Shown: positions 8,171 through 58,046, counted from the stretch's first letter. The stretch: 64,000 bases of DNA from Trichosphaerium sp. ATCC 40318 (GCA_038496445.1 JALMLS010000596.1:62001-126000); one strand, 5' to 3'. The notes: generated from the sequence alone by a model not told the origin. Translations and numbers: made by a program.

Positions 8171-10821
8171 TTAGGTCTCCATACTACTAAGTCTCCTTTC
8201 GCATCTAGCTCTTCCAGTCAAGTACACAGGAGCCATTTCCATAATCACTTCTTGTGGATCTACAGTAGTTGGTTCTACCTATGACATACCGTTAGTGGAA
8301 GAGATAATGTAGCCTAGTGCTGTTAATCGACTTGAAGTCATTTAGCTTGAAACCGAACTCCAAACCTTCTATTTGTTCAGGGCAAGTCAAGCATCAGCAT
8401 TATTGTCTCACAAACGGAGTTTTTTTTTATGGTGGAATTTTTTGCCTCTTTTTCTTTACGTACTGTTACAACTATGTTCTCAACAGCAAGCATATCAACT
8501 ACTTCTGTTACTGCCATATCATCACCCACGAACGCTCCTACGATTTCAGGGACAGTCATATCGCCTCCTAACATGTGATTGAGTCTCATTTTTGTGCACA
8601 TCTGATGGTTAATCAAATTGGTATTATACCTCCGTTTGAGTTTACTGTAACAACTACTCTAGTTCCTGCTGTTTGACGTTTTGCAACCACGTTGTCAGGT
8701 TCTTGGGTGATAACTCCATCATTGGGTCCGAGATTCATTGCAGCTAACATAGCTTCTCCAACAGATTGTACAACTTGTTGCTCTGCTGGGAACGGATTGG
8801 AAATAGACACTGATACACTACCTACAGTCCACAAATGTCAACTTTGCAAAAGTCTTTGCTGATAAAAAGTTATTTGTGGTTCTTACTTGTATCTGGACAT
8901 AAGAAAGGAACAGTAGCATCAAAAGAAACACTACCATTCTAAAAAAAAAACGCGATTAACATAAACTGAAAGAAATACAATTCTTGAGGCCTACCCCTAG
9001 TCGCCATGTCGTAGGCAGACCCACAAAAATAAAGTCGAATCCTCCTACAGCAGGATAAAAAGGAGGTGTATTTCCAAACATTTCTGGAACTGCTGTAAGG
9101 CCTACAGGAGTCATTAAATTTTCAGGTCCTTGATTCAATGTTACAGGCATCTGTTTAAGTAAATTAGCACTATGCATACAATAATCGGTTTAGAATTATG
9201 AGTACATTTGTTGTCCATCCCATATGAGCAGTGAAAGTACCATCAAGGTTGTCAGTAACGCAATCCATACGTGGTGTTATTTGTAGTGGTGCTAAAGTTG
9301 GCGGAAATGTTGTAGGAGGTAGTGTAGTTGGCGATAGCGTTGTTGGTGGTAGCGTTGATGGTGGATTTGTAGTTGGTGATTGTGTTGTTGGTGGTAGCGT
9401 TGTTGGTGGCACTGTTGTAGGAGGTAGTGTAGTTGGTGATAGCGTTGGTGGTGGTATCGTTGTAGGTGGTGCTGTTGTAGGAGGGCTTGTAGTTGGTGAT
9501 TGTGTTGTTGGTGGTATCGTTGTTGGTGGATCTGTTGTTGGAGGGCTTGTAGTTGGTGATTGTGTTGTTGGCGATACCGTTGTTGGTGGCTCTGTTGTAG
9601 GAGGGCTTGTAGTTGGTGATCGTGTTGGTTGTGCTGTTGGCGGTGGCAATGTTGTTGGTGGATCTGATGGTGGAGGTGCTTGTGTTGTTGGCGGATCTGA
9701 TGGTGGAGGCGCTTGTGTCGTTGGAGGATCTGATGGCGGTATTTGACGTTTTATGTTTATTATGTCCACGCTTTCAGGACAGAAGTGTATGCTTCCAAAC
9801 TTGGTTTCTCTAAACAACTGTACATTACCTTGGTGTTAGAGTTAGCTAACTATCTAGCACAAGTACTGAACGTAGTTTAATATATATAGAACGTACCTGA
9901 TGCTTTGTTTAGTAAATAAACAGAGCGCGAAGACATGTTCTTTATCAATAGGCTTGAATCATTATTCTTAGTTAGTATGTCCATGTGTCCTTTTACTGAA
10001 GTGATTGTTTTGATCGTGGTACTGTTAATGTAGCATTCATTAGAGGATGGAACCAAGTCTGACAGAAAATGGAATATTGTACTCTCTTCGCCGTTGTAGG
10101 TTGATAAAAAAGTTGAATCTCCATCGACGGTAACTACACAAAACGATTAATGAGACAATTTCTACTTAGAGAAATCGCTAGAACAAAAGCATGTGCTTTT
10201 TTTCTATAGTTTAGGTTATTTTTACTTACTGGCTATTACTTCTGTTTCAATATTGGCTTTACACGTGTGTTCTTGTTTTGAAGCGCACATGCTGTTGGTT
10301 TTAATTGAGTATTGATCAAATTGTTTCTTTTCATTGGAATAAAGAACTAAGGTGTCTTCGGTTGAAAATGAACCAGCAGAGTACTCGTAAGGTAGCCCAG
10401 TATCACAAAGAAGAGTTCCATCAATATCGTAAATAAATAGCGACAAGCCATCAACGACAATGAAGTAAGAGCAGTCTTCAGACGGAACTAGAATAAAGGA
10501 GGGTCAAAAGGAGGCAAAAGGGAGAAAAATATTAGATCTCTTCGTTAGTATCGTACATGAAAATGACCCAGGAACCAAGGTGTGACTGTATTCCGTACGA
10601 TAATCTAGAAGAAATTATCGTTACAGATGAGAACTTAGTGGAAATGAATACATACTATTTTTGAGATTGTTATCAGCTATCCACATTGTTTGTTTATGGT
10701 TGTTTTGATAATCTTCTTTTGCTGTTGAAACAAATCCAATAAAGTTAGATTTTGTAGAAGCCTGAGCTTTGGTATACGCTATGAGACATAGAAATAATAT
10801 AATTGAAATAGGTAATCTCAT
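8171..10821 (-). CDS. Secreted Pro/Thr-rich (mucin-like) multi-exon protein
   Basis: Signal peptide MRLPISIILFLCLIAYTKA from ATG at 10821. PPTT repeat stalk followed by a TPRMDCVTDNLDGTFTAHMGW module. The 3' end is approximate. Confidence 0.7.
9290..9742 (-). repeat. Coding tandem repeat: ~15-nt (P/S)PTTx units plus three PPSDPPTT units
   Basis: Visible imperfect repeats (gttgttggtgg/gtagttggtgat) translating to PPTT-rich sequence. Confidence 0.9.
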
Positions 10822-38425: not shown

Positions 38426-40826
38426 TTATAATTTAGCGCGTTGAATGTTTAGTTGAGCCTTAGAAACCCATAATCCATGGAACCCATAAGGTACACGTTG
38501 AGCAAGAGCTACACGACACACAACTGACATATTCTTGGCATCAAGAACAAGGACCTTAGAGTAAGAAACAGTAAGAGATAAAGTTATTTGATTTTGTAAC
38601 TTACCTCAGAATTATTCTTTGTTTCATCGTAAATATAACCAACCAAGTATCCCTAAATTTTGAGTTTCAGTATAATTTTTTAACCTAATATAAAACTCTT
38701 ACATCATCCTCAGCACTATTTGTCCCTGTTTTATTGATAAAAACGAATTCTCCTCCGTATCTTTGTTCACCATGAAGCCATCGGATTTTTTCTTTGAAAA
38801 AAGCTTAGAATAATAACCATACGGGTGCCATGGTATTGACATGCTTATGTCGCTCTAACACCTTACCTTTTGTCTCTAGATTAATCTTCTCGACGCCATT
38901 GTAATGTGGCATCTCACTAGACGTGCGTATAGCGTAATAAGCATACCTAAGGATACCATAAGGAAGAAATGCATAAAAATAAGCTGCTGTTTTCTATTAA
39001 GGTGACTTACTGGCATTTCCTTCCAGTGTAATTATTATTTATCACAGGGAATTCTGTATCATAATCAAGAGGCATCATAGGCTCGTCTTCTATTTTACCA
39101 GTTTCCATATCAAAACACCAATGGTGTATTATACCAAACTGTAAAAATATAATCATTAGTTCTTTTTCTCAAAACGAAAGCAAACGCACGTTTTTTCTCC
39201 CAGCATAGGACAAATTAAAGTCTAATGTCTTATACCTAGTACCATACAAGTGTACTTTAGAACCATCTTCCCATGCATTTCCTGTATGGAACATAAAGAA
39301 AGAAGGCATCTCAAACCATTTGATTTGAGAGTCGTCCTTTGGCAACAATCAGTTTCGAGCGGTTTGGTTTGAATATTTCTTTACCTTCATGTGTCGCGGA
39401 CCAATACCTATCCTAGCTGGCATTTCAGGCCTGAATGTGCCCAATCTACCACCATTAGCTGGAGCTTTTGTAGCATCATAGACCAAAGGTAGATCCAAGA
39501 AAACAGTGTAATTCTTGGTAATTGCACAGTCATGCATCTTGTGGAAATAAACAAGTCAGTTTCGCCTCTCATTTGACCTTTAAGTACCAATACAGGCGCT
39601 TGGACCTTGATTTTAACATCTTTTGATAGTTTTCCATCCTTACTAACAGTATTGTATTTTATGTAAGGCGTTTTTGCATCGTAACCAAAGAACATCATTT
39701 CGCCGGTTTCTGGATCAATCTGAAAAGTAAGTTGTGGAACTAAATTATTTCTAACACTCACCTTTGGGTGTGCTGTGAATGAGTGTTTCAGTTTATTGTT
39801 GTAGGTATAAGGGCCAACAGTATCCAACGTTTGAGCAGTAACCCAGGTAGGTGCGCTACCTTCAACCAAAGCCATGAGCCGTCTAACACGAAATTACATT
39901 ACTCAGTCACGTGTACAAGTAAAACAGGTAAAATAAATTTGAAGGTACGTACTTGTCGTGAAAAACCAGTGCAGTGTTCGCTGTGTTTTCTATACAATTG
40001 AACAACGGTTAGAGCGATTTAAAAAAAAACAATTAAAAAAAATTCACATCGTACTATTCCAAGGGTTAGGTGCACCTCCCCAATACGCTTTTCGGAAAAT
40101 ATGATACATCATGTGCATTAAACTCCTGTATTAGAAGGTAAGAACATATACTACACGTATACCATAGCAGGTGAGAGGCAAAAATTATTGTTTTTTTGGA
40201 TTTGTTCGAAACATTTTTCACCAACTTGGAACACAAAAAAAAAAGCACGTACGCTAGGCCTACCAAGTCGGTATAAACAGAATAATAGTATGCCTTTCCA
40301 AGCTGTTTCTCGTATAAATAGCCTCTTGTTTCTATAAACCTTCAAATTTAAAAAATGAGTTGATAACACGTGAGAAACGTTAAAAAAAAGCAACAAACTC
40401 ACTTATTGACAAACGACACTTGTCCTTGAGAAAATCTAACAGCGTGTAACATGCCATCACCTAAAAACTTAGATACACGCTACACACATCTATGAGCTCA
40501 CCCATAAACCAGTGGTAGTCCCTTTTGATAAAGTTAAAATTAATTGAAGTTGTACGATCATGTTTCTTACTTTATTGGTGCGAATTGAGGATTTGGTCCA
40601 TTTCCTGAGGGTTTTGAGCGTCATTGTGGTAAATGGAGCGTGTAAAAAGAATGTTCAGACGTACGAACGAATAGACCATCTAAATCGTGTGGAATCGCTC
40701 CTTTTGTTGTGTCAGTGCGTATGGTAAATATTTTAACGCACCTTCAATGATACTAAGATTAACGGCTGTTGTTTCCTTTGTAACAGGCTTAAAATTGCCA
40801 GTTAATGCCTCACGTTGTGTTGTCAT
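38426..40826 (-). CDS. Carotenoid cleavage dioxygenase (CCD/RPE65 family) with C-terminal PTS1 (-AKL)
   Basis: GNFKPV; RNGPNP; HWFMGDGMLH; FTAHPKIDPETGEM; MHDCAIT; FHTGNAWE; GGEFVF; EDDGYL; RVPYGFHG. Ends QRAKL*. Confidence 0.92.
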
Positions 40827-42291
40827 GGTATATTGTCGTAGATATGAATTCAGGTGATATTTCAACTCGGACAAATACGCGACTTCTAAAAGTGCGAATT
40901 TGCTTGAAAGGAGCTCTATGCAGTCACGCCATGTAGTTTTGTTTTGTGTCGGTTTAGCTATTGTACGAACAAATTGTACGCGGTAAAACTGTATGCACCA
41001 ATTTTTACACGCGTGGACCTATCGAATAGGCAGGTTTACCAATGGGTACGTTGACTAGATGAGTTTTGAAGCGTAAAAGCATACTACAATCTCACGTGAA
41101 TAAACAGTGCGAAATACTTACGAAAAAACCTATTTGCTCTAGTGCGCGTGCTTTTACAGCGTTGACACGGCTACAAAGAGTATTCTACTCATCACGTGAT
41201 GTTTTCTAAGGCCGACATTACTCGTACGACGAAAAAGTGCTTGATGTTGGTATGGAAGGTACGAAACTATTTAACTTAACTTTGCTCGTTGAAATCAGAA
41301 AACAATTTCCTCGCGTCAAGTGTTTGGCATTTTGTAGCATACTTCTGCCACGCAGTCGCGTATTACAGGCAACAGTTGCTAGCCTCGCACTTGCTAATAT
41401 TTTGATATTACTAGCCCTGGTGGGCTTCTAACTCAAGCACTTGAATCTCTAGGTCTTCATGTTGATAGCGGCAGTCAATGCACAAAATCTCGTTGACTGT
41501 GTCGCAGTGAACGATTAGTGACGGTGTTACACTATATCTTGTTGTAGTTATACTAAGGGTATTAAGGGTACTTGTTTCGTAAATATAGCTCGTGGTACAA
41601 AAGTGCAGTATGTGTCTCTTTGCGCCATCTGATGTGTTTGACTAGCGCATTCACACATCCTAGCGTGTAGTACATCGATCGGGTTAATGTTTGTTACGTT
41701 GGTTGTATTTGTCGTGTCACGTGTTATTCCTGATACACAAACGTGATACGGTTTTTTCACTTTTAAAAATAGCGTCAGACTGCTCACCTTTCTCCTTTTG
41801 AATTTGAGGCGTAGGCACGAACACTACAGACAGTAGAAAAAATTTGCCTAAAGATTTCAAGATTGTTCACTAACTATTTGGTTCAGCATATAAAATAATA
41901 TCATATGACGCATAAAAAAGCACTCATGTATCTTTTACCATGGTTACGCTTTTTGTACTTTTGTATGACGGTTACGGAGATGTGAACAAATATTTCTCAC
42001 CCAAATGGAGATGACGCAAGACAATTTTGTGTACATTACCATAACAGATTTATGGAAATAGTTGGTAGAGTCAGTAAGCTGCCTACAGTTTTTTTTAGCT
42101 CTCACAAGTTTTTTTTGTTTCAGATTCTCCTCAATGTCAAAGAGGCCTAATATTAGTTTCTAAGCTATATTAACGCTATTTCAGAACAGTTCTATACTTG
42201 TATCACAATCACACTAAGTTTGTGTAGCGCTACAAGGTTGAAAACTCAGAAGTTTCATTTTTTTCCAAGTTCAAAATTCAAAACAGTCAAC

Positions 42292-45200
42292 ATGGGCGGA
42301 GGAAGCAGCAAACCAGAACCAAAGCCACCAGCGCCAACAGAGATTATTACGGCTAACGATGCCGGTGAGATTAAGATGTATGCTCACCCGGACTTCCAAG
42401 GCAGTTGTTGGAGTTTTAGTTCAGCGGCAAGGACAATATCAGGTGACAATCAAGTCTCATCCATTCGTGTGATCAAAGGTACTATAGAGTTTAAACGCTT
42501 TGCTTAAATAGTATCTAGGCTATTGGGTTCTCTACGAGAATTCTGGGTTCACTGGAAAGCGGTATTTTTGCCATGAGACAGGCGGACCACTGCGTGAGTT
42601 TTTTTTTTTTTTTTCAAAAAACTCAGAAACAAGCTTCTTCTTTCAGTCTGAAGTTTGTCTTAGGAGATGGCAGATACCCTCACCCAGGAAAAGATGGTAA
42701 ATTTTTCTTCAGGGGTGACGTTATCAGTAGTGTTCAACCAGTACGTCAAAAAAGTTTACTTTGTCTATTTAAGGATGTAACGTTTGGTTTCTTTAGGTTT
42801 CTCGTGCTGTTGTACAAATGTTCATTGGAGGCGACCAAACCGCTTACGATTTGTATGTGTCAGACAAAGTTGCTCAGTCTCATGATGCGTACACATCTAT
42901 AAGGGTTCACGGTAAGTCTTTAACAGCTTTTGTTTTAAAGCACTTGTTTAACATCATTTGTAGGCGGTGCTTGGCGTGCTCGAGAGTACCACAGGTCATC
43001 AAGAAATGGACAACTCTGGGTACAAAGCGAGGTATTTTGAAGAAACAACTAACATCCAGTAGGATTTCCATGCAAAAGGCGGAAGAGGTTTGAACTAAAG
43101 CACAATTCACATCTTGTTCTAAAGTGGTATTTAGGTAACAATGCGTTTTATGATGCTATGAAAGGAGATTTTAAAAATGATTCTATTTCTGATGTTGAAT
43201 TTCTTGGAGAGGATTATATCGCATGTTACGCTGAAGAAAACTTTAAAGGTATGAAGCATTGTTTTTTATTTTGTTTTGATTGTCAACTTTTTTACCTTCT
43301 ATTTTAAGGCCGTTGCACGTGCTACGGAAAAAATGCCTCATATGCTTATGGCTTCAAGTCTTGCATTGTAGGCGGACAAGGAAGTTGGTTACTGAAAGCT
43401 GAGGACTCTATGTTCTACGTGAAGGCAACCGGAGGTGATAAAGGTGACGGGCGATACCCAAGTTCATCATTTTGGGCAGGCGCTAAGATTAAGTCTGTCG
43501 AAATGTACCAACGTACGATTAATAAGTCGAACAACCAGGTTCTAATACGAAACCTTAGCTTCTGAGGAAACCCAACCTGCCATTATCTTCTACAACGACC
43601 CTAATTTTGGAGGAAAAGGAACCTTGCTTCAAAGCGCATGGGGTGCTGGTAGTGTTGTTACATACGGTACAAAAACAACTGGAAGAACTGAACCTTACAC
43701 TTTACATAGGCAGTAAGATTCTGATTGGTGCTGTTGATACTCCGTTCTTTTTGTGGTCCAAGAAGCAGCACTATAGAACAGGTTCAAAGCAACAAATGGG
43801 TAAGTGCATATGCACTTTTACTTGCATCTGGTTGTAACTCATTTCTATGATAGTCGCTCTTATGGGAGGTAAACAACAATCATGGATTGTAAGACCTTAC
43901 ATGGGAGAACCTAACAAGAAAGGTCCAGTCAAAAGTGGAGATTTGATAAGACTTTGGCATGAGACACGTACTTGCGCTTAACTCAACTGTTATTCCTACT
44001 AATGTCCCTTTAAAGGCGGTTACCTTCACAGCCACGAAGGACATGATAGTCCACAACGCTCTGGACAAGAGGTTACTGTGTGGGAAGGATACGATCACAA
44101 TGATCAGTGGGTATTCACTCTCGATGATTGTAAGTACTGATTGTGTGGTGCTATTGCTAGATTGCTAACGCTTTTTTAAGCACCTGTATGGACGCCTCAT
44201 TCTACGTTTAAGTTGAGACATAAATCAACAGGGAAATACCTAAGCTTCACAAACGTGAATATGAGCCAAGCTCCAGGGTCTAAGGAGGTACGATTAAAAA
44301 AAGCTTATTTTTTGTTGCTGACGTATTTGTGAAGGTTTGTGCTGGTTCTGGATCAACGAAGTGGGAATGTACCAGGATTGTTGAGCATGCTGGTACGCTA
44401 TAGTGTATGCATCTTGCTTTCATTGTGCTTATCCGTTTTGTACTAGATGATGGTTCACTCGACAACGTTTTTTCATCCGCTCAAGTCATTAATGGAACAT
44501 GGATAGCGTATGATAAGAAAAACCAGAGTGGAGACTTCGTTACGTTTGCTTCCGATGGTGGAGAATCCGCACTAACTCCGGACGTAATTACTTATGGTGC
44601 GGTCGCTTATTAAAACACTTGAATTAACAAATTAAAGGGTCCAAGCTTCGCTTGAAACACAGTGCTCAAAAGAAATACCTCACTGGCGGTTCACTACACT
44701 TCCCAGGAGATAGAGACTACTACAGAGAGGGTACGGTAACAGCAGCACTTACACATAAGCTTACGATCGATTCGTAGTGTTCTGTATTCCAGAAAAAACT
44801 GAAGAATCCGTTTGGATTGTATGTGGTGAGTATGGTACAAATGAACGAACAGGTGAACCTATCGCAAATGGAAATGTACTTCGTTTGAAAAACGAAGAGA
44901 CAGGCACGTGCTATCACGTGATTGTTTTTTACCGTCTAACTTCTGTACTACAGGGTTTTTTCTTAGTAGCAAATCTGGTACAGAAAGTGTCATGAGCAAA
45001 CAACAAAAGGCGTATGTATACGATGGTAGGGAGCGCGATGATGCCAATCTGCGCTTGGAGTTGAGCAGCAACACGTCATGGACAATTGGTGCTGAGTGTA
45101 AACTTATTCATGTTGAAACGCACCATGCTTTGCACAGTCATAGTACAGAGTATAAAACCACATTCCATGGAAGAACCACTACAACACAAGAGGTACTAGT

Positions 45201-48200
45201 AAACTGGCATTACTAGGTAAGTAACACTTGTAGGTTACATTCCATACACACCGTGATCACAACGATATGTTCATTGGTGATGACATGCTGTACCAAGCAC
45301 GTTCTGCTCATGGTACAACTTTCCGTAGCTTATCAACCAAACGCTTACTCAGTTTATTGTAGGTAACGGAAGGTATTCAACACTTCCTACAAAGCTAGAT
45401 AATAAGATTTCGGCTGTATCTCCGTTGATTTATCCTCTTATTGAACTGTATGATGAAGAAGCTTTTGATGGTCAAGTTGAAAAGCATACATCAGCATCTT
45501 CCCATCTAGAAATGGAATCTCATAACTCAATCATTGTACGCAATGGAACTTGGGCTGGATTTACAGAAGTATATGGAGGTGAAGCGTACCTCTTGGATCG
45601 CTTTGGAGGTCCTGGCCGTAAGTATTTTTAGCAATTACAGTTGTACTAATGATTTCTTTCTATAGAAAATGGTCACTACCTTCACGCTGAAGACTGGGGT
45701 GGTATGCCATCTTTTAAGAGTTTGATGCTTTTGTCTTGGGATTATAGCCTCATAGAAGTCTTTTCTGAGCCAGATTATGGCGGTGTGATGATGCAGTTCA
45801 TAAGCACTCATCACAAGATTCCTCTTGATCACACTGTTGGTTCAAGTACGCCTACATTACAGTTTACTTTCATTTTCTCACTGTGACTATAGTTCGTGTC
45901 ATTAGAGGTACATTTATCTTGTACTCCACACAAGATTTGAAAGGACAATCCTTTACTGTTTCAGCTTCAGATGGTCCTAGAGGTACAAATTAAATGTCAA
46001 GTAATTTCAGTACTAATTACTATACTAAGGAGATGGACGTTATAGTGAAGCTGACGATTGGGGTGGTGCGGAAGTTGTTATCAAGTCTATCGAGTTGCCA
46101 GATGATACCTTCTACGCTGCACGTGGACTATTTATTCAACTCGTTTCTTACCTTTTTCTTTTGCACAGGCCGTTGTTTCTGGATCAAAGGTACAGCTTAA
46201 CCACCTTGACAGCGGAACGCACTTAGGAGAATACGAGATCATAAGGCACGCAAAGTTTATCTTAGAACTGTTGTACTTATGCTTCTTTAGGGAAGGTGAT
46301 CGCCCTGTTAGTTTCTACCTATCAAACGGTATTATAAACGGCGATGAAGTGTACCTCAGGGAAGATGATGAATATTTCACTTGGAGAGGAGAACCAAGAG
46401 AAGGGCTTGAGCGTTTCGAAACAAACAGAAGCAAACCAGAACCTTGGATAATTAAGATTGCAGATAATGGCATGTTAGCTTCTCATACGCGCTTCACTCT
46501 ATCTCCAAAGGGTCATGATGATCTCTATCTATCGTATGAAGACCGCGGTAAGTTGTAATAAGCTAGCACGTGCAGTATTTTATGTTGATTTTCTGTTTAG
46601 ATACGGTTTTGTTGCCTATGCGTAAAGATCCCTACGAACATGACTTCATTGCCGCTAACTACCGCGCTGATGACTTGGATATAAGACTTGAGAGATTCGT
46701 CGGGTATGATCGTGGCGATGATGCTACATTCTTCGATGATGGTCCTGTTCTAAGAGAAGAAGTCCTCACCGAAATCAGAGCTAGCAAAGACTTTAGAAGC
46801 TACCAACTTGTGTATGTTTGTTTCTTGCTTCTATAACAAGTTTCTAACGTTACCAAGATACTCATACATTGATGGAAAAGGTGTAACACGTTTGGCACCA
46901 TCTGAGAAACGTGGTAACCAACAATTGGAATGTGACCAAAGGTGAGAATCAACGTACTGTTTCGTAATTTTTTCTTACCGCTTCGTTTTTTTCTAGGATG
47001 AAGGTCAATGTTACAGACCCTAATCTCGAAATTGAAATATTCTATGAAAGTAATAGTATTACGGGTATCACTATCGGGTCTCAAAGTTTGGGAAGCACTA
47101 AAGGAAGAGTACGAAAAATACAAAACAATAAACAAAAAATGCTAATCTTTGTTTGTCTTTAGTCAAGATCTTTCGACATGGATAAAGGAAAGCAATTCTG
47201 TGGATTCAGAGGATATCAAATGGATACTCACATAACAAGACTTGCGATTCAATACCGTATGGTTAAAGGAAGTGTACGTACTTACCATATAATTGTGATA
47301 GCCGATCGTTACTTACTCCAAAAAGGGATGGCTTGCTCGCTACTTCAAAGAGAAAGGATGTATTGGAGAAATGTTTATTGGCGTTAAGACTTTGGAAGAG
47401 CCACCACCATTTACGTACCAGAGTGCTCTACTGACTGGATCATTCCGCTCTCGACAGAGAATGGACAAACCAAAATTCTGTACGTATTCATCCAATACCA
47501 AGTTCATAACCTCAAAGTTCATTACCAAATGTTTGAATCTGTATCGTTCGCCTGAAAAAGTTCGTTTGTGCTCAATTGTACTTATTGATTTTTACTCTAG
47601 CACTTGAAGGTTGGAACACATCAAAGTCAAAGATAACAGTTGACAATCAAGTTGTCAATGAAAACAATGCTGACAAGACTCATAGCGTAAAAGTTTTTGA
47701 TGGATCTGTTCATGGTGTATCTGTATACATGGAATGGAACGCTGCAGACAAGCACACCGGAACATTTAAGGTAATGCGCTAGCTATTAACAATACCTATC
47801 TTTTACTAATGAATCAATAGATTAAAGAGGGTAGCGCTGGATACAATGTCGAAACTAAGGATATGTACCCTGGCATGACTGAGCGTGATGTATTGAGAAG
47901 CTACTTGCTTAACATGCCCCCAACAAATGCTTTTGGAAGAGCTTTCATCGCTGTTTTGTTGACAGAAACAGATACTTCTGCTGAAACTGTTGCTGTTCAA
48001 AAGACATTCGCAGCCAATAAGAAGCTTATTCAAGTTCTTACCACTAACTGGATGGAAAACGAAAAGGAAGCAAAGTGCGTTCTCCAAACAAATCAACTAG
48101 TAGTGTATTAACTTATTACCTAAAGGAACTACTTGTTTGACAACATCATGGGCGCTATTGACGAAAAACTACAAATAGAAACCTTCAGTACGTTCCAGAT

Positions 48201-50249
48201 TTGGATCTGATTTATCACGTGTTTAATGCTTTTCGTAGAAAAGACTGTTGTTGATAAAAAGCATTACGTTGTTGCTGATGATGTCCGTCTCTCTGAGGTG
48301 ACGTCTTGTTATATTCTGCAAATTCTTACTTTTTCTGCAGGTACTTAAAGTCAAAGAATACAAAGACCTTGCTTTGGGTTACCTTGGTGTTATGGCTTAC
48401 AACTCGGATCCTAAACGCTACAACATGATCAATAAGGCTAAGATCAATAAAGACATGGCAGCCATGTTCAAATCTAAGTGGGCAATTGATGGTAAGACAA
48501 TAGATATTGCAAAAGAAAGAACTCACTCCCTTTACTAGAAACAAAACGTATCAGCGATATGCTAAGAACCAAGTACCAACCTCAAATGGCATTCTCTCAA
48601 GTTTCCCCCCAAGAAGTGAGCCACTATGTGGATGACATTGGTGCTATTCTTGATACACCAACATTCAGGTACATAAAGACAGTTATAACAATTCCCTAAG
48701 CACTACTCCAGATCTACCTTTATGAAGATGACGACTTCTGATCAAATTGAAGCTGCTAAAGCTGTTATTACAGTATTCACTGCTTTGGAGCCTAAAGTAG
48801 AAAAATGGGAACCTTATCTTCGTACTATAATGGCCCTAGTATCAACCTCACGTACGGCTTATCGCAGTGTATTGATTCATTATTACTCACACGTGTTAAA
48901 GATGAAATGAGCTCAATGGAATCTGTAATAGCTGCTCTTGAAAGAGACGAGCTAGCATTCAGAAAAGCCTTGGCGGAAACTCTCGGTGGAGTACGTATTT
49001 ATCCAGAATTCGAGCAAAATCTTACATCGGAATCAGATAGGTGACGCTGAAAAGGAACAAATTGTAGTGTGGAGTAAACTATTCGGATACTCAGGTAACC
49101 TCTTTTACTCTTTACCCCAATTAACTTCTTTCAATAGCACCTGCGTTTACTGAGGCTGCAGAATACTATATCGACTGGTTTGTTGGTCAAGTTACCAGCA
49201 ACCCAAACAAATACAGGACAAGTACGTAAAAACTGTTTATCTAGATTTTTCTTTCTGTTTTTTTTCTTTTAGTTTTTCTGTTGTTTTTGTTTTTGCTAAA
49301 ACAGGTTGTCTAGGCAAGGGAAGACAAGCTCTGCAACAAGATTTCGATGATGCAGTTGAAGGATTTCAGCTTAAATGGGCTCAAAGGAAGAGTATGGTAA
49401 AACTCTTTGCAAAAGTAGCTGCTATTTCTGGTATTATCGCTGTAGGCTTTTCAGCCAACTTTGATACGCCAGTGAACTCTGCGTACTTTGGTGTTAGCCT
49501 CGCTGATGGTATGTACTATTTCAAAGTCATTTATCAAAATTAAAACGCTGTGTAGCTATAGCGAATGCCTCAGAAAGCATAACTAGCTTTGCTACTTATC
49601 TGGATGATATTCTCGTAAAGTACAGCAAGACAATGCAAAAACTCCATAACAAAATATTGTCTCCTTTGAAGACTGTTATAGCTAAGGCTGGATCTAAAGT
49701 AGCTTCAAAAGCAGCTGCAATATCGGCAAACTTCGGAAAATTGGTGCGTAATGAGAAGACTTCTTTGAGTAATGCTTTTTTTCTTACTTTTTTCGCACAG
49801 ACCGCAAATCTTGGAAAGCACGCTGGTAAACTGTTAGGACCTACTCTCGGCGTGATTGCATCTGCATTTTCGTTTTACTACGCTTGGGAATCGTTTGAAA
49901 AGGGTGATATTGTAGATGGAGCTCTTAATGTTGTTGCCGGAGTTGTTGGAGTACTAAGTATGTTGAACAGCTGGTATTAGATTGAAACTAATGTTCGTTT
50001 AGCTGGAGTACTTGCTGGTATTAATGCTGTTACTGGATGGATGCCTGGTATCAATGCTGTAATGGTTCGTTAATTGTTTCTTGGTTCTTTCTGTTTTGCT
50101 AACTTTTTATCAAGGCTGTGGCTTCGCTTTTGGTTCTTGTTGCTACTCTGTTATGGACTTTTGTATTGAAGCCAAAGAAGAAGCACGAGTTAGTTCGTCA
50201 ACTGAAACTCAAAGGATGGGCAACATCAGAATTGAAAGAAGATTACTAA
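42292..50249 (+). CDS. Giant predicted N-myristoylated beta/gamma-crystallin + MIR + jacalin-like + PA14-like protein with hydrophobic, pore-former-like C-terminus
   Basis: A continuous spliced reading frame across more than 35 short introns from MGGGSSKPEP to KEDY*. Crystallin motifs (MYAHPDFQG..DNQVSSIRVIKGYWVLYENSGFTG). MIR motifs (SGDLIRLWHETRGYLHSH..QEVT). Domain names are by motif recognition only. Confidence 0.8.
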
Positions 50250-50490
50250 GGGCTAAGCTATCTATAATAGCAAACATTCAACGCAATAAATCTCTTTCCT
50301 TTCATACTAGTCGCTTACTCCAACAATTATTTTTGGAAAACTCAAGAGGTGATGGCATTAATATGAAAAGCATTGTTGAAAACAAGCCTTACAAAGAGGG
50401 AAACATTGAACGATACAGAGTGATACATAGCACAGAGTGAGCATTTTGTGAACAAAAAAAACCAAAAGCAATTAAGTGAAATGTATTTAT

Positions 50491-55811: not shown

Positions 55812-58046
55812 ATGAATTGTAAAGTCACGTGGCTATTTGTTTTATTGGCACTGATACAATTGACTCTTTCGGTTACTGTACAATTACATTGGGAGGTAAA
55901 AGAGATGCTAGCGTATCCAGATGGCATGCTACAAGCAGTGGTACAATTATTTCTTCGTTATCTCTCCACAAGCTCTTAACTTGTGTTAGATAGCTATTAA
56001 TGGCGCATTTCCTGGTCCTACTATACGTATAGACATGGGCGACGTACTACACGTGACTGTAAAGAATTTATTGAGCGAAACGACATCAGTCCATTGGCAT
56101 GGCATTGAACATAATTTTGGTAACGCATCGACATTTATGGACGGCGTTGAAGGTGTAACACAATGTGGTATACGTCCAGGATACTCATTTACATATAAAT
56201 TTACGCCACAGGCGCCAGGGACGCACTGGTAATGCATTTAGGCTTTTTTCATAATTGTATCACGTACCTACAATTTTAGGTATCATGCTCATTCTCATGG
56301 TCAACGTACAGAAGGGTTCTATGGTACACTCATAGTAAATCCAACAAATGAATCAGCGAATCCTCTTCCCATTGAGTACAGATACGATGAAGATTTTGTT
56401 GTGATGGTACATGAAGCGTATGTAGTGTATTGAACTTTGACTTTCAATGATAATTTATCTGTTAGGTATCACGTGTCAGATAAGAGGCGAGTGGAAATAT
56501 ATGACCATGCTACATCAGTTGATGAAGTTTCCTGTGTCCAATCTCTTCTGTGTAATGGCAAAGGAGTCTTTAACTGCTCAATGGTATGTACTGTTAGCAT
56601 TGCGAAGGTTCTCTGACACATTGCGATAGGTAGGACAGAATGTATCATACCCGTACTGTCCTCAACATTTGTACAATACATACAGCGATTGTCGTGAAGG
56701 AGAATACGAAAGATATTCAGGTACACTAAGAACCGATTATATGACGTTACACTCCTTTTTAAAATACTTTAGTTACAACGGGTAATACGTACATGTTGCG
56801 TATAGTTGCTGCAATGTCTGATTTGGACTTTGTGTTTTCAGTTGATGATCACGATGTTGACGTACGTCAATTGGTTTACTCTTGTTCTTTCTCGCTAACG
56901 TACTTAGATAATAGCAAGTGACTCACACTTTACAAAACGTCTATCATCTGGAGGATTTATTTTACACAGTGGCGAGACGTATGATGTACTTCTTACAGCA
57001 AACAAAGAATCAGGTACGAAAATAATTATTATTGTATTTGAGCATTTTTCCTCTAATTGTGTATGCCAGGTAGCTTCTGGATTCGACTTGAGTTCCCTGC
57101 TGAAGGTATGAATAGTAAGTATTCAAACCTTTTAAACGTGAGTCCATCTAGGAAGCAAGAACGAGGCTGATAATCACAAATTCGCAATCTTAAGCTACAA
57201 TGGAGATGAATCAATTCCAGTTTCAACAACAAATCAACATGATCGTATCCTTGACACAATCGATCAATTAGAGCCTTACTACTATCGCCAAGTACCTGGT
57301 TTTAATAAGGAAATAGAAATGACATTCAATTCTATAAAAGGTCCCACGTTTACAGTAAATGATGTAGCCTTTGAAGTACCCGAAACACCTTTTATTTTCG
57401 GAGGTGGAAATAAAGATTCATTGTACACAGTGCCTCTTGGCTCTTGGGTTCAAATAGTTTTGAACAACCCTTTCAACAGGTAAGGGCTTTATCATTTTTT
57501 CAACATATGAAGAACCTACCTCCTAAACGCTCTTATACAAACATACACTCACTTTTTTCTAGTGGATTCCATCCAATGCATATTCATGGTCACTCTTTCT
57601 ATGTGATGGGTAGTGGCGCTTACAATGGTTCATACAAAAGCGAGTATAGTAAAGATTTTAAAGAACATCCTGTGTTGAAACACACCGCATTAATGCCACC
57701 GAAGGGTTGGACTGTCGTTCGATTTAAAGCAGATAATCCAGGATTTTGGTTCCTTCATTGTCACAAAGAACTTCATTTTGAGAAAGGTATGGCTGCAGTG
57801 ATCAATGAATTTGGCGGTCCTTTACGTGTACCTGAAGATGTAGATATGTGGTGTGTAAATAGACAAAACTCTTGGTGGGATAGAATCTCTTTAGGTGAAA
57901 AAATGAGTATTGTGTTTGTGCCGATAGGAGTAGCATTGATATTAATGACTGTATGGGCTGTATATGCTACTGTCATGTGGCGTAGAGCTTCTAGAAGCAG
58001 ACTAAGAGACAACTATGAAGAGCTAGTTTCTACTATCACAACGTGA
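55812..58046 (+). CDS. Multicopper oxidase (laccase/ascorbate oxidase/Fet3-like), type I membrane protein, paralogue 1
   Basis: Signal peptide; HWHG, WYHAH, HPMHIHGH, HCHKELHFEKGM; C-terminal TM helix (IVFVPIGVALILMTVWAVYATVMW). Confidence 0.93.

Follow-up and report, generated by a model that had tools for sequence, protein, structure and literature searches.

The 64,000-nucleotide (nt) stretch of DNA from Trichosphaerium sp. ATCC 40318 that was analysed here (GCA_038496445.1, JALMLS010000596.1:62001-126000; the window) carries on its plus strand, at 42292-50249, a gene for a giant crystallin protein. The predicted protein comprises six beta/gamma-crystallin domains, the fourth of which holds two MIR trefoils, followed by three conserved domains, a long helical region and a hydrophobic C-terminus. 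The reading we favour, tentatively and with a probability of about 45%, is that of a resident membrane scaffold or sensor responsive to Ca2+ and ligands, which would lie in the cytosol and be attached to the membrane at both ends, the C-terminal hairpins serving as the anchor. A cytosolic protein fixed to the membrane at both ends is suggested because the hydrophobic leader is absent, the MGxxxS start is conserved, the Cys content is low and the hydrophobic segments are even in number and end in a basic stretch. The evidence for the gene and its domains is set out first and is followed by the alternatives to this reading, of which the most serious is a protein that inserts into membranes on demand.

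A single spliced gene and its relatives

When the three frames are read as a chain of short open pieces, the coding sequence (CDS) begins with the ATG at 42292 and ends with the TAA at 50247-50249. The gene model has 44 exons and a CDS of 5,664 nt encoding 1,887 amino acids (aa) followed by TAA, with consistent phases and no internal stops. The 43 introns measure 36-121 nt (median 50 nt) and are bounded by GT-AG in 42 cases and by GC-AG in one. The transcript contig L001 (Joint Genome Institute 3300016894; 2,318 nt, intronless) maps without mismatch to 47080-50339. Joint Genome Institute samples numbered in this range are probably marine protist culture transcriptomes that were assembled anew. 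L001 falls into 18 blocks with 17 GT-AG introns of 43-121 nt between them, which shows that transcription and splicing of the 3′ 40% of the gene follow the reading exactly. Exons 28-44, the last 17 coding exons, are thereby fixed exactly. Exons 1-27 are predicted from frame-compatible junctions, scored with matrices trained on the 17 introns proven by L001, and then from collinearity with the relative P0002.

Simple splice decoders either kept introns as coding sequence or over-split exons in this gene and were replaced by transcript mapping, junction scoring and homology. Two stretches that resemble introns mislead such decoders. An apparent 54-nt intron at 45702-45755, in frame, stop-free and bounded by GT..AG, was rejected as it is coding by homology to P0002, and a similar in-frame, stop-free GT..AG stretch at 49615-49671 is retained in L001. 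At the single GC-AG intron, a GT-AG path at 46123 was considered and rejected. Pfam and PDB searches with the window protein were made exon by exon, and contiguous queries were the natural transcripts and proteins, namely L001 with P0001 and L002 with P0002.

P0001, a 713-aa protein that is 100% identical, was recovered with a 131-aa C-terminal query (phmmer against 1.84 billion representatives). It starts at an internal Met, and the reading frame continues an upstream exon (L001 1-140 = window 47080-47273). Since L001 is cut at its 5′ end and the frame is open to its first base, P0001 is a truncated call, and a separate gene is ruled out. P0002 is a protein of 1,510 aa that starts with MGSGQSS and derives from an intronless transcript contig of 4,650 nt (L002). 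Its alignment to the window gene is collinear throughout, residue 1 falling at 42292 and residue 1,510 at 50240. Because this single open reading frame (ORF) aligns in order and end to end with the window gene, the crystallins, the undefined domains, the helical region and the hydrophobic tail form one polypeptide in at least one relative. An earlier reading of the same DNA, made from the sequence alone (the sequence-only reading), had proposed a single spliced frame of roughly 2000 aa, and the 44-exon model and its collinearity with P0002 bear this out.

Together with P0003, these sequences make up the whole family found among the 1.84 billion representatives, and none of the three has a name. 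Word-index protein searches with exon 31, P0002 and P0001 gave no further relatives, a C-terminal profile found nothing in viral and prokaryotic genome collections, and no paralogue was found within the 64-kb window. On the basis of this narrow family the architecture is previously undescribed, in agreement with the sequence-only reading, which knew of no described protein built in this way.

Crystallin array, nested MIR cassettes and conserved domains

P0002 matches the Pfam Crystall family (PF00030) over four stretches with 123 bits (E 4e-36), above the gathering score, and also matches lens and microbial crystallins in the PDB. Single exons of the window gene match the same family at E 5e-4 (exon 1), 0.016 (exon 2), 0.005 (exon 14) and 7.5e-5 (exon 19). 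Their scores of 15.7-23.2 bits lie below the cut-off of 25, but each match falls at the expected profile positions and is collinear with P0002. Read against P0002, the region resolves into twelve Greek-key motifs forming six domains. The aromatic-x4-aromatic-x-Gly corner is found six times within crystallin exons and once across an exon junction, the remaining motifs being degenerate. A 'GG..DGxY' loop occupies the second motif of most domains. The sequence-only reading had counted about six crystallins, each with a GG..G.GRY loop; the number of domains stands, whereas the loop belongs to most of them rather than to every one. The N/D-N/D-x-I/V/F-S/T-S type pattern of Ca2+-binding microbial crystallins has four strict matches in about 12 Greek-key motifs. 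The array looks to be of the Ca2+-binding microbial type, and the protein may bind Ca2+.

The fourth crystallin domain is interrupted by two MIR units. In the second unit, exon 17 matches the SDF2-like protein 3mal_A with E 1e-5 in a sequence search of the PDB. In the first, the matches are sub-threshold: exon 12 matches Pfam MIR (PF02815) at E 0.026, and the best PDB matches of exon 11 are the MIR domains of PMT3 (E 0.11) and PMT1. Its identity as a MIR unit is supported by these two independent weak matches, which both point to MIR proteins. Both trefoils had already been recognized in the sequence-only reading. The exons that flank the units align to adjoining parts of domain 4 of P0002, with exon 8 at residues 266-292, exon 14 at 304-336 and exon 19 at 340-422. 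The exon sums of the two cassettes, 393 and 510 nt, are both multiples of three. In other crystallin domains a phase-1 intron recurs ahead of the 'DGxY' loop, and it is exactly there that the second cassette is placed. Because the flanks adjoin in P0002, the cassettes are phase 1-1 and both are absent from P0002, the two MIR trefoils are read as nested within a single crystallin domain, the pattern that exon shuffling into such a recurrent intron would be expected to leave. A literature search found no description of a nested MIR-in-crystallin arrangement.

Three conserved domains, designated X1, X2 and X3, follow the crystallins. At the level of exons, X2 and X3 are 30% to 55% identical to P0002. 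X1 has no match in Pfam or the PDB in sequence and profile searches. The sequence-only reading had described X2 as jacalin-like and X3 as PA14-like and had derived a lectin function from them. X2 gave no match to Pfam Jacalin (PF01419) at E≤10 for P0002 and P0001 or at E≤1 for the exons, and no PDB lectin at E≤10. X3 gave no match to Pfam PA14 (PF07691) with the exons, P0001 or P0002 to E≤10, and a two-sequence profile found no PA14 protein in the PDB. For both stretches, PDB searches by single sequence and by profile gave no relevant structure. Although both stretches are conserved in P0002, the jacalin and PA14 assignments, and with them the lectin function, failed every search run. The resemblance is kept as a lead, and the claim of a lectin-guided pore-former is not established.

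Membrane attachment and alternative readings

Upstream of the ATG at 42292 the frame is closed by a stop at 42154-42156, and no other ATG falls between the two. A hydrophobic leader is absent, the maximum 9-aa hydropathy within the first 40 residues being 0.5, in agreement with the MGGGSS start without signal peptide that the sequence-only reading had noted. The N-myristoylation pattern asks for Met-Gly at the start, a small residue in position 6 and any residue but Pro in position 7. As a sequence pattern it fits both the window protein and P0002. The Cys content is 0.7%. Since a signal peptide is absent, the MGxxxS start is conserved, Cys is scarce and a basic stretch follows the last hydrophobic helix, the bulk of the protein is probably in the cytosol.

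At the other end, the helical region opens with the most conserved block of the C-terminal half (exon 31, 47821-47920), where 33 of the 78 aligned residues are identical to P0002. Four hydrophobic segments are conserved in P0001, P0002 and P0003 and are followed by a basic stretch. The helical region, hydrophobic helices and basic end of the sequence-only reading are therefore retained, all being conserved in P0002 and P0003. With an even number of membrane spans and the basic stretch behind them, a cytosolic position of both termini would fit. The 'KGWA' motif at 50208-50219, after the last helix, is invariant in all three family members and could be a sorting or interaction signal.

In the resident-scaffold reading, a myristoyl group, likely at the MGxxxS start, would tether the cytosolic protein to the membrane by its N-terminus. 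The C-terminal hydrophobic helices would form one or two helical hairpins, after which the basic stretch and the 'KGWA' tail would return to the cytosol. Between the two anchors would lie the six Ca2+-type crystallin domains, the fourth with its two MIR trefoils, the three domains of unassigned fold and about 440 helical residues. Lying flat on the membrane, such a protein could serve as a scaffold or sensor that responds to Ca2+ and ligands, with the hairpin module as a permanent anchor and not a lytic device. There are precedents in AIM1/CRYBG1, for six crystallin domains joined to a trefoil in the cytosol (PMC2929430) of an actin-binding protein (PMC5529512), and in hisactophilin, for a beta-trefoil protein that is myristoylated (PMC9245636). 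Myristoylation, topology, Ca2+ binding and the scaffold role are steps that we infer from the sequence.

The sequence-only reading had instead seen a pore-forming executor. In this alternative the hairpins would be shielded by the helical region until the sensing of Ca2+ or a ligand releases them, and their insertion would permeabilise the membrane. The C-terminus gave weak phmmer matches (E 7e-6 to 8e-4 against the 1.84 billion representatives) to the phage proteins P0004-P0007, whose matched parts fall in PHROG families named peptidase or endolysin. P0003 touches a PHROG tape-measure family, and P0001 has no PHROG match. A profile of the three eukaryotic tails aligns by hhalign to P0007 with 93.4% and to P0004 with 70.7% probability, and it matches all the tandem units in the phage proteins, each over identical profile positions. 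The similarity is specific to the order of residues, since none of 2,000 composition-preserving shuffles reached the real score (26-37 bits, against a shuffle maximum of 13). A tblastn search of the window module against phage records gave no direct match. The gene with the motif in cyanophage P-HM1 has gp26/gp51 on one side and gp5 on the other, within the baseplate-hub module, a placement which suggests a tail-hub or tape-measure-like ejection protein. Records of T4-like cyanophages differ in the name given to this gene (L004 5086-6966 = NC_015280.1 9557-11437; H1-H15), which appears as a peptidase, an endolysin, a late control gene D protein or a hypothetical protein. In T5 pb2 a hydrophobic stretch is followed by a peptidase; this stretch has been proposed to insert and form a channel, and proteins of this class are proposed to be stored soluble before they enter a target membrane (PMC10038345). 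By sequence, the C-terminal tail of the window protein belongs to this class of membrane-inserting hairpins, a similarity which says nothing on permeabilisation.

These phage similarities, together with the long helical region ahead of the hairpins, modelled as amphipathic, are what favours a conditional executor. A further lead, and only a lead, comes from sub-threshold matches of two family members at the same C-terminal part of the profile of the type VI secretion system (T6SS) effector BTH_I2691 family in NCBIfam (P0002 1334-1478, E 0.3; P0003 192-328, E 0.067). P0002 also matches PADLOC LeoBC at E 0.023. The BTH_I2691 and LeoBC matches are probably driven by hydrophobic composition. No family of pore-formers (RTX, TcdA/TcdB, colicin, aerolysin, MACPF and others) is matched at E≤10 in Pfam by P0001 or P0002, and matches in NCBIfam and PADLOC are at noise level only. 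The link of the C-terminus to RTX and TcdB that the sequence-only reading had drawn finds no support in this result; of its executor, the likeness of the tail to phage membrane-inserting hairpins is what stands, while a match to a curated pore-former is missing. The absence of pore-former matches above noise is counted in favour of the scaffold. The lipidation motif, the basic stretch and the conserved tail resemble a resident membrane protein, the phage similarity extends over about 65 residues with the motif present once here as against two or three copies in phage, and the one structural model is unusable. The window gene is a spliced nuclear gene with ordinary eukaryotic neighbours, and neither a phage tail-gene context nor a peptidase or length-determining region was found in it. 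A conditional membrane-inserting executor is, on balance, unlikely. The bolder proposal, that a protist fused a phage-type membrane-penetration hairpin to a sensor made of Ca2+-crystallin, nested MIR and beta domains, giving a lipid-tethered protein that inserts into or opens a membrane on Ca2+ or ligand, is improbable. If true, it would amount to a eukaryotic cell-autonomous sensor-executor built on a module shared with viruses of bacteria.

Several points weigh against a resident scaffold. The check for a single transcript, which the sequence-only reading had called for, succeeded exactly over 47080-50339 (L001), but metagenome scans with the 5′ exons found no transcript for the 5′ 4.8 kb (42292-47108). 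The myristoylation pattern is seen in only two sequences. About 900 residues are without fold assignment, and the AlphaFold model of P0001 from a three-sequence alignment, another of the checks proposed earlier, has a predicted local distance difference test (pLDDT) score of 38 and is unusable; its secondary structure, strands to residue 141 and then helices, is at that score a hint only. The phage hairpins related to the tail module are stored soluble and insert on demand, a behaviour that fits a conditional inserter equally (PMC10038345).

The crystallin array and the beta-trefoils might instead bind actin under modulation by Ca2+, and the protein would then link the membrane to the cytoskeleton in the manner of AIM1, fascin or hisactophilin. 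AIM1/CRYBG1 is a non-lens vertebrate protein with six tandem beta/gamma-crystallin domains and a beta-trefoil, and tolerates a large insert in a Greek-key motif (PMC2929430). It is described as actin-binding (PMC5529512), and hisactophilin as a myristoylated beta-trefoil protein with a myristoyl switch (PMC9245636). The argument is one of analogy only: beyond the crystallin fold that both have, a sequence relation to AIM1 was neither tested for nor found, and the trefoils of the window protein are MIR-type and nested as opposed to terminal and ricin-type. Such a linker is decidedly unlikely.

A topology in which the crystallin, MIR and beta domains are outside or lumenal, as in a surface adhesin or lectin with a C-terminal anchor and a coincidental MG start, is very improbable: microbial beta/gamma-crystallins are often extracellular, and many MIR domains are lumenal, among them those of SDF2 and PMT (SDF2-like proteins and PMT being what exons 17 and 11 match), but a signal peptide or N-terminal hydrophobic segment is absent, some 1,700 residues ahead of the first hydrophobic segment would need to be moved across the membrane, Cys stands at 0.7%, the basic stretch that follows the last helix suggests that the C-terminus is cytosolic, and MGxxxS is conserved in P0002.

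The surroundings of the gene are those of a eukaryotic genome. The window has a GC content of about 37%, long bacterial-type ORFs are absent from the region of interest, and introns are very short. Introns of about 50 nt and a transcript match from a microbial sample speak against a human origin. Rfam and tRNA scans of the window were empty. The positions of all features are collected in the table.

Table. Positions of features in the window, counted from its first nucleotide.
Feature	Position	Strand	Basis or remark
Whole CDS, ATG to TAA	42292-50249	+	three-frame reading
MGxxxS motif (candidate N-myristoylation), then Pro/Lys-rich linker	42292-42315	+	start MGGGSS; same pattern in P0002
Beta/gamma-crystallin domains 1-3 (exons 1-7)	42364-42740, 42797-43202, 43203-43512 (borders approximate)	+	Pfam Crystall on exons 1 and 2; P0002 1-265
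Crystallin domain 4 (exons 8, 9, 14 and start of 19), interrupted by two MIR cassettes	43559-45427	+	alignment to P0002; Crystall on exon 14
MIR unit 1 (exons 10-13)	43854-44392	+	exons total 393 nt; both borders in phase 1; without P0002 counterpart
MIR unit 2 (exons 15-18)	44638-45312	+	exons total 510 nt; both borders in phase 1; without P0002 counterpart
Crystallin domains 5 and 6 (rest of exon 19, exons 20-22)	45428-46118	+	Crystall on exon 19; P0002 340-542
GC-AG intron, 50 nt	46119-46168	+	no other junction leaves both frames open and preserves the match to P0002 514-566; no transcript covers 46119-46168
X1, conserved domain (exons 23-24, about 115 aa)	46169-46547	+	39% identical to P0002 544-648
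X2, conserved domain (exons 25-28), earlier "jacalin-like"	46601-47273	+	up to 52% identical to P0002 655-816
X3, conserved beta-rich domain (exons 29-30), earlier "PA14-like"	47326-47770	+	exact exons from L001; 36% identical to P0002; strands in the low-confidence model
All-alpha region, about 440 aa (exons 31-41)	47821-49725	+	L001 exons; low-confidence model; conservation in P0002 and P0003
First hydrophobic segment, within the helical region	about 49391-49462	+	hydropathy
Motif of about 65 aa, spanning two introns	49714-50016	+	amphipathic helix, hydrophobic helix with 'FSFY' core, acidic 'GD' turn, start of next hydrophobic helix
Three C-terminal hydrophobic helices (introns included)	about 49819-49878, 49909-50028, 50041-50165	+	hydropathy 1.5-2.5; kept in P0002 and P0003
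Basic stretch, then 26-aa tail with 'KGWA'	50166-50246	+	invariant in 3 of 3 family members
3′ untranslated region	50250-50339	+	at least this extent, as far as L001 reaches
RPE65/carotenoid-oxygenase exon	39411-39875	-	E 2e-15
Multicopper-oxidase exon, then hydrophobic tail	57444-58043	+	E 1e-27
Pro/Thr-rich extensin-like repeat ORF; Gly/Val-rich ORF on opposite strand	9173-9817	-	

Relation to known systems

If the resident-scaffold reading holds, the protein would establish giant membrane-attached beta/gamma-crystallin proteins as a new family among free-living microbial eukaryotes. Its nested MIR exon cassettes would show cleanly, in a natural protein, how exon shuffling inserts one domain into another, and the approximately 900 conserved residues of unassigned fold, together with the hairpin motif shared with phage, are concrete targets for structural and evolutionary biologists.

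Proteins that join a crystallin or lectin-like module to a membrane-active part are represented by betagamma-CAT (PMC2262142) and natterin-like proteins such as Dln1. These differ in carrying an aerolysin-type beta-pore module; neither this nor another Pfam pore-former is detectable in the window protein. The phage tail-hub and tape-measure-like proteins (the T5 pb2 class, PHM1_019 of P-HM1, and PHROGs 23178, 34252 and 18972) share with it the hydrophobic hairpin motif of about 65 aa. Where the window protein, encoded by a spliced nuclear gene, has a single C-terminal copy, the phage proteins have two or three in tandem, together with a peptidase and a tail context.

The MIR units resemble those of SDF2 and SDF2-like proteins, protein O-mannosyltransferases and the inositol trisphosphate (IP3) and ryanodine receptors, as seen from exon 17 against 3mal and exon 11 against PMT3 and PMT1. 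They differ in their setting, as phase 1-1 exon cassettes placed within loops of a crystallin domain. With the class of Protein S, spherulin 3a and M-crystallin the array shares the Greek-key signature, with an N/D-N/D-x-I/V-S/T-S type pattern in four motifs. Members of that class consist of one or two domains, and most of them are extracellular or associated with spores, whereas the window protein has six domains in a giant, predicted membrane-attached protein.

The nearest described design is that of AIM1/CRYBG1, in which six cytosolic crystallin domains are combined with a trefoil and a Greek-key motif tolerates a large insert. Orthology is not claimed. The trefoil of AIM1 is terminal and of ricin type, its N-terminal region is filament-like and membrane segments are absent, whereas in the window protein the predicted MIR-type trefoils are nested in domain 4 and the array is followed by about 1,000 residues without an assigned family and by the hydrophobic tail. 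The protein would thus extend the "six crystallin domains plus trefoil" design of vertebrate AIM1 to the protists.

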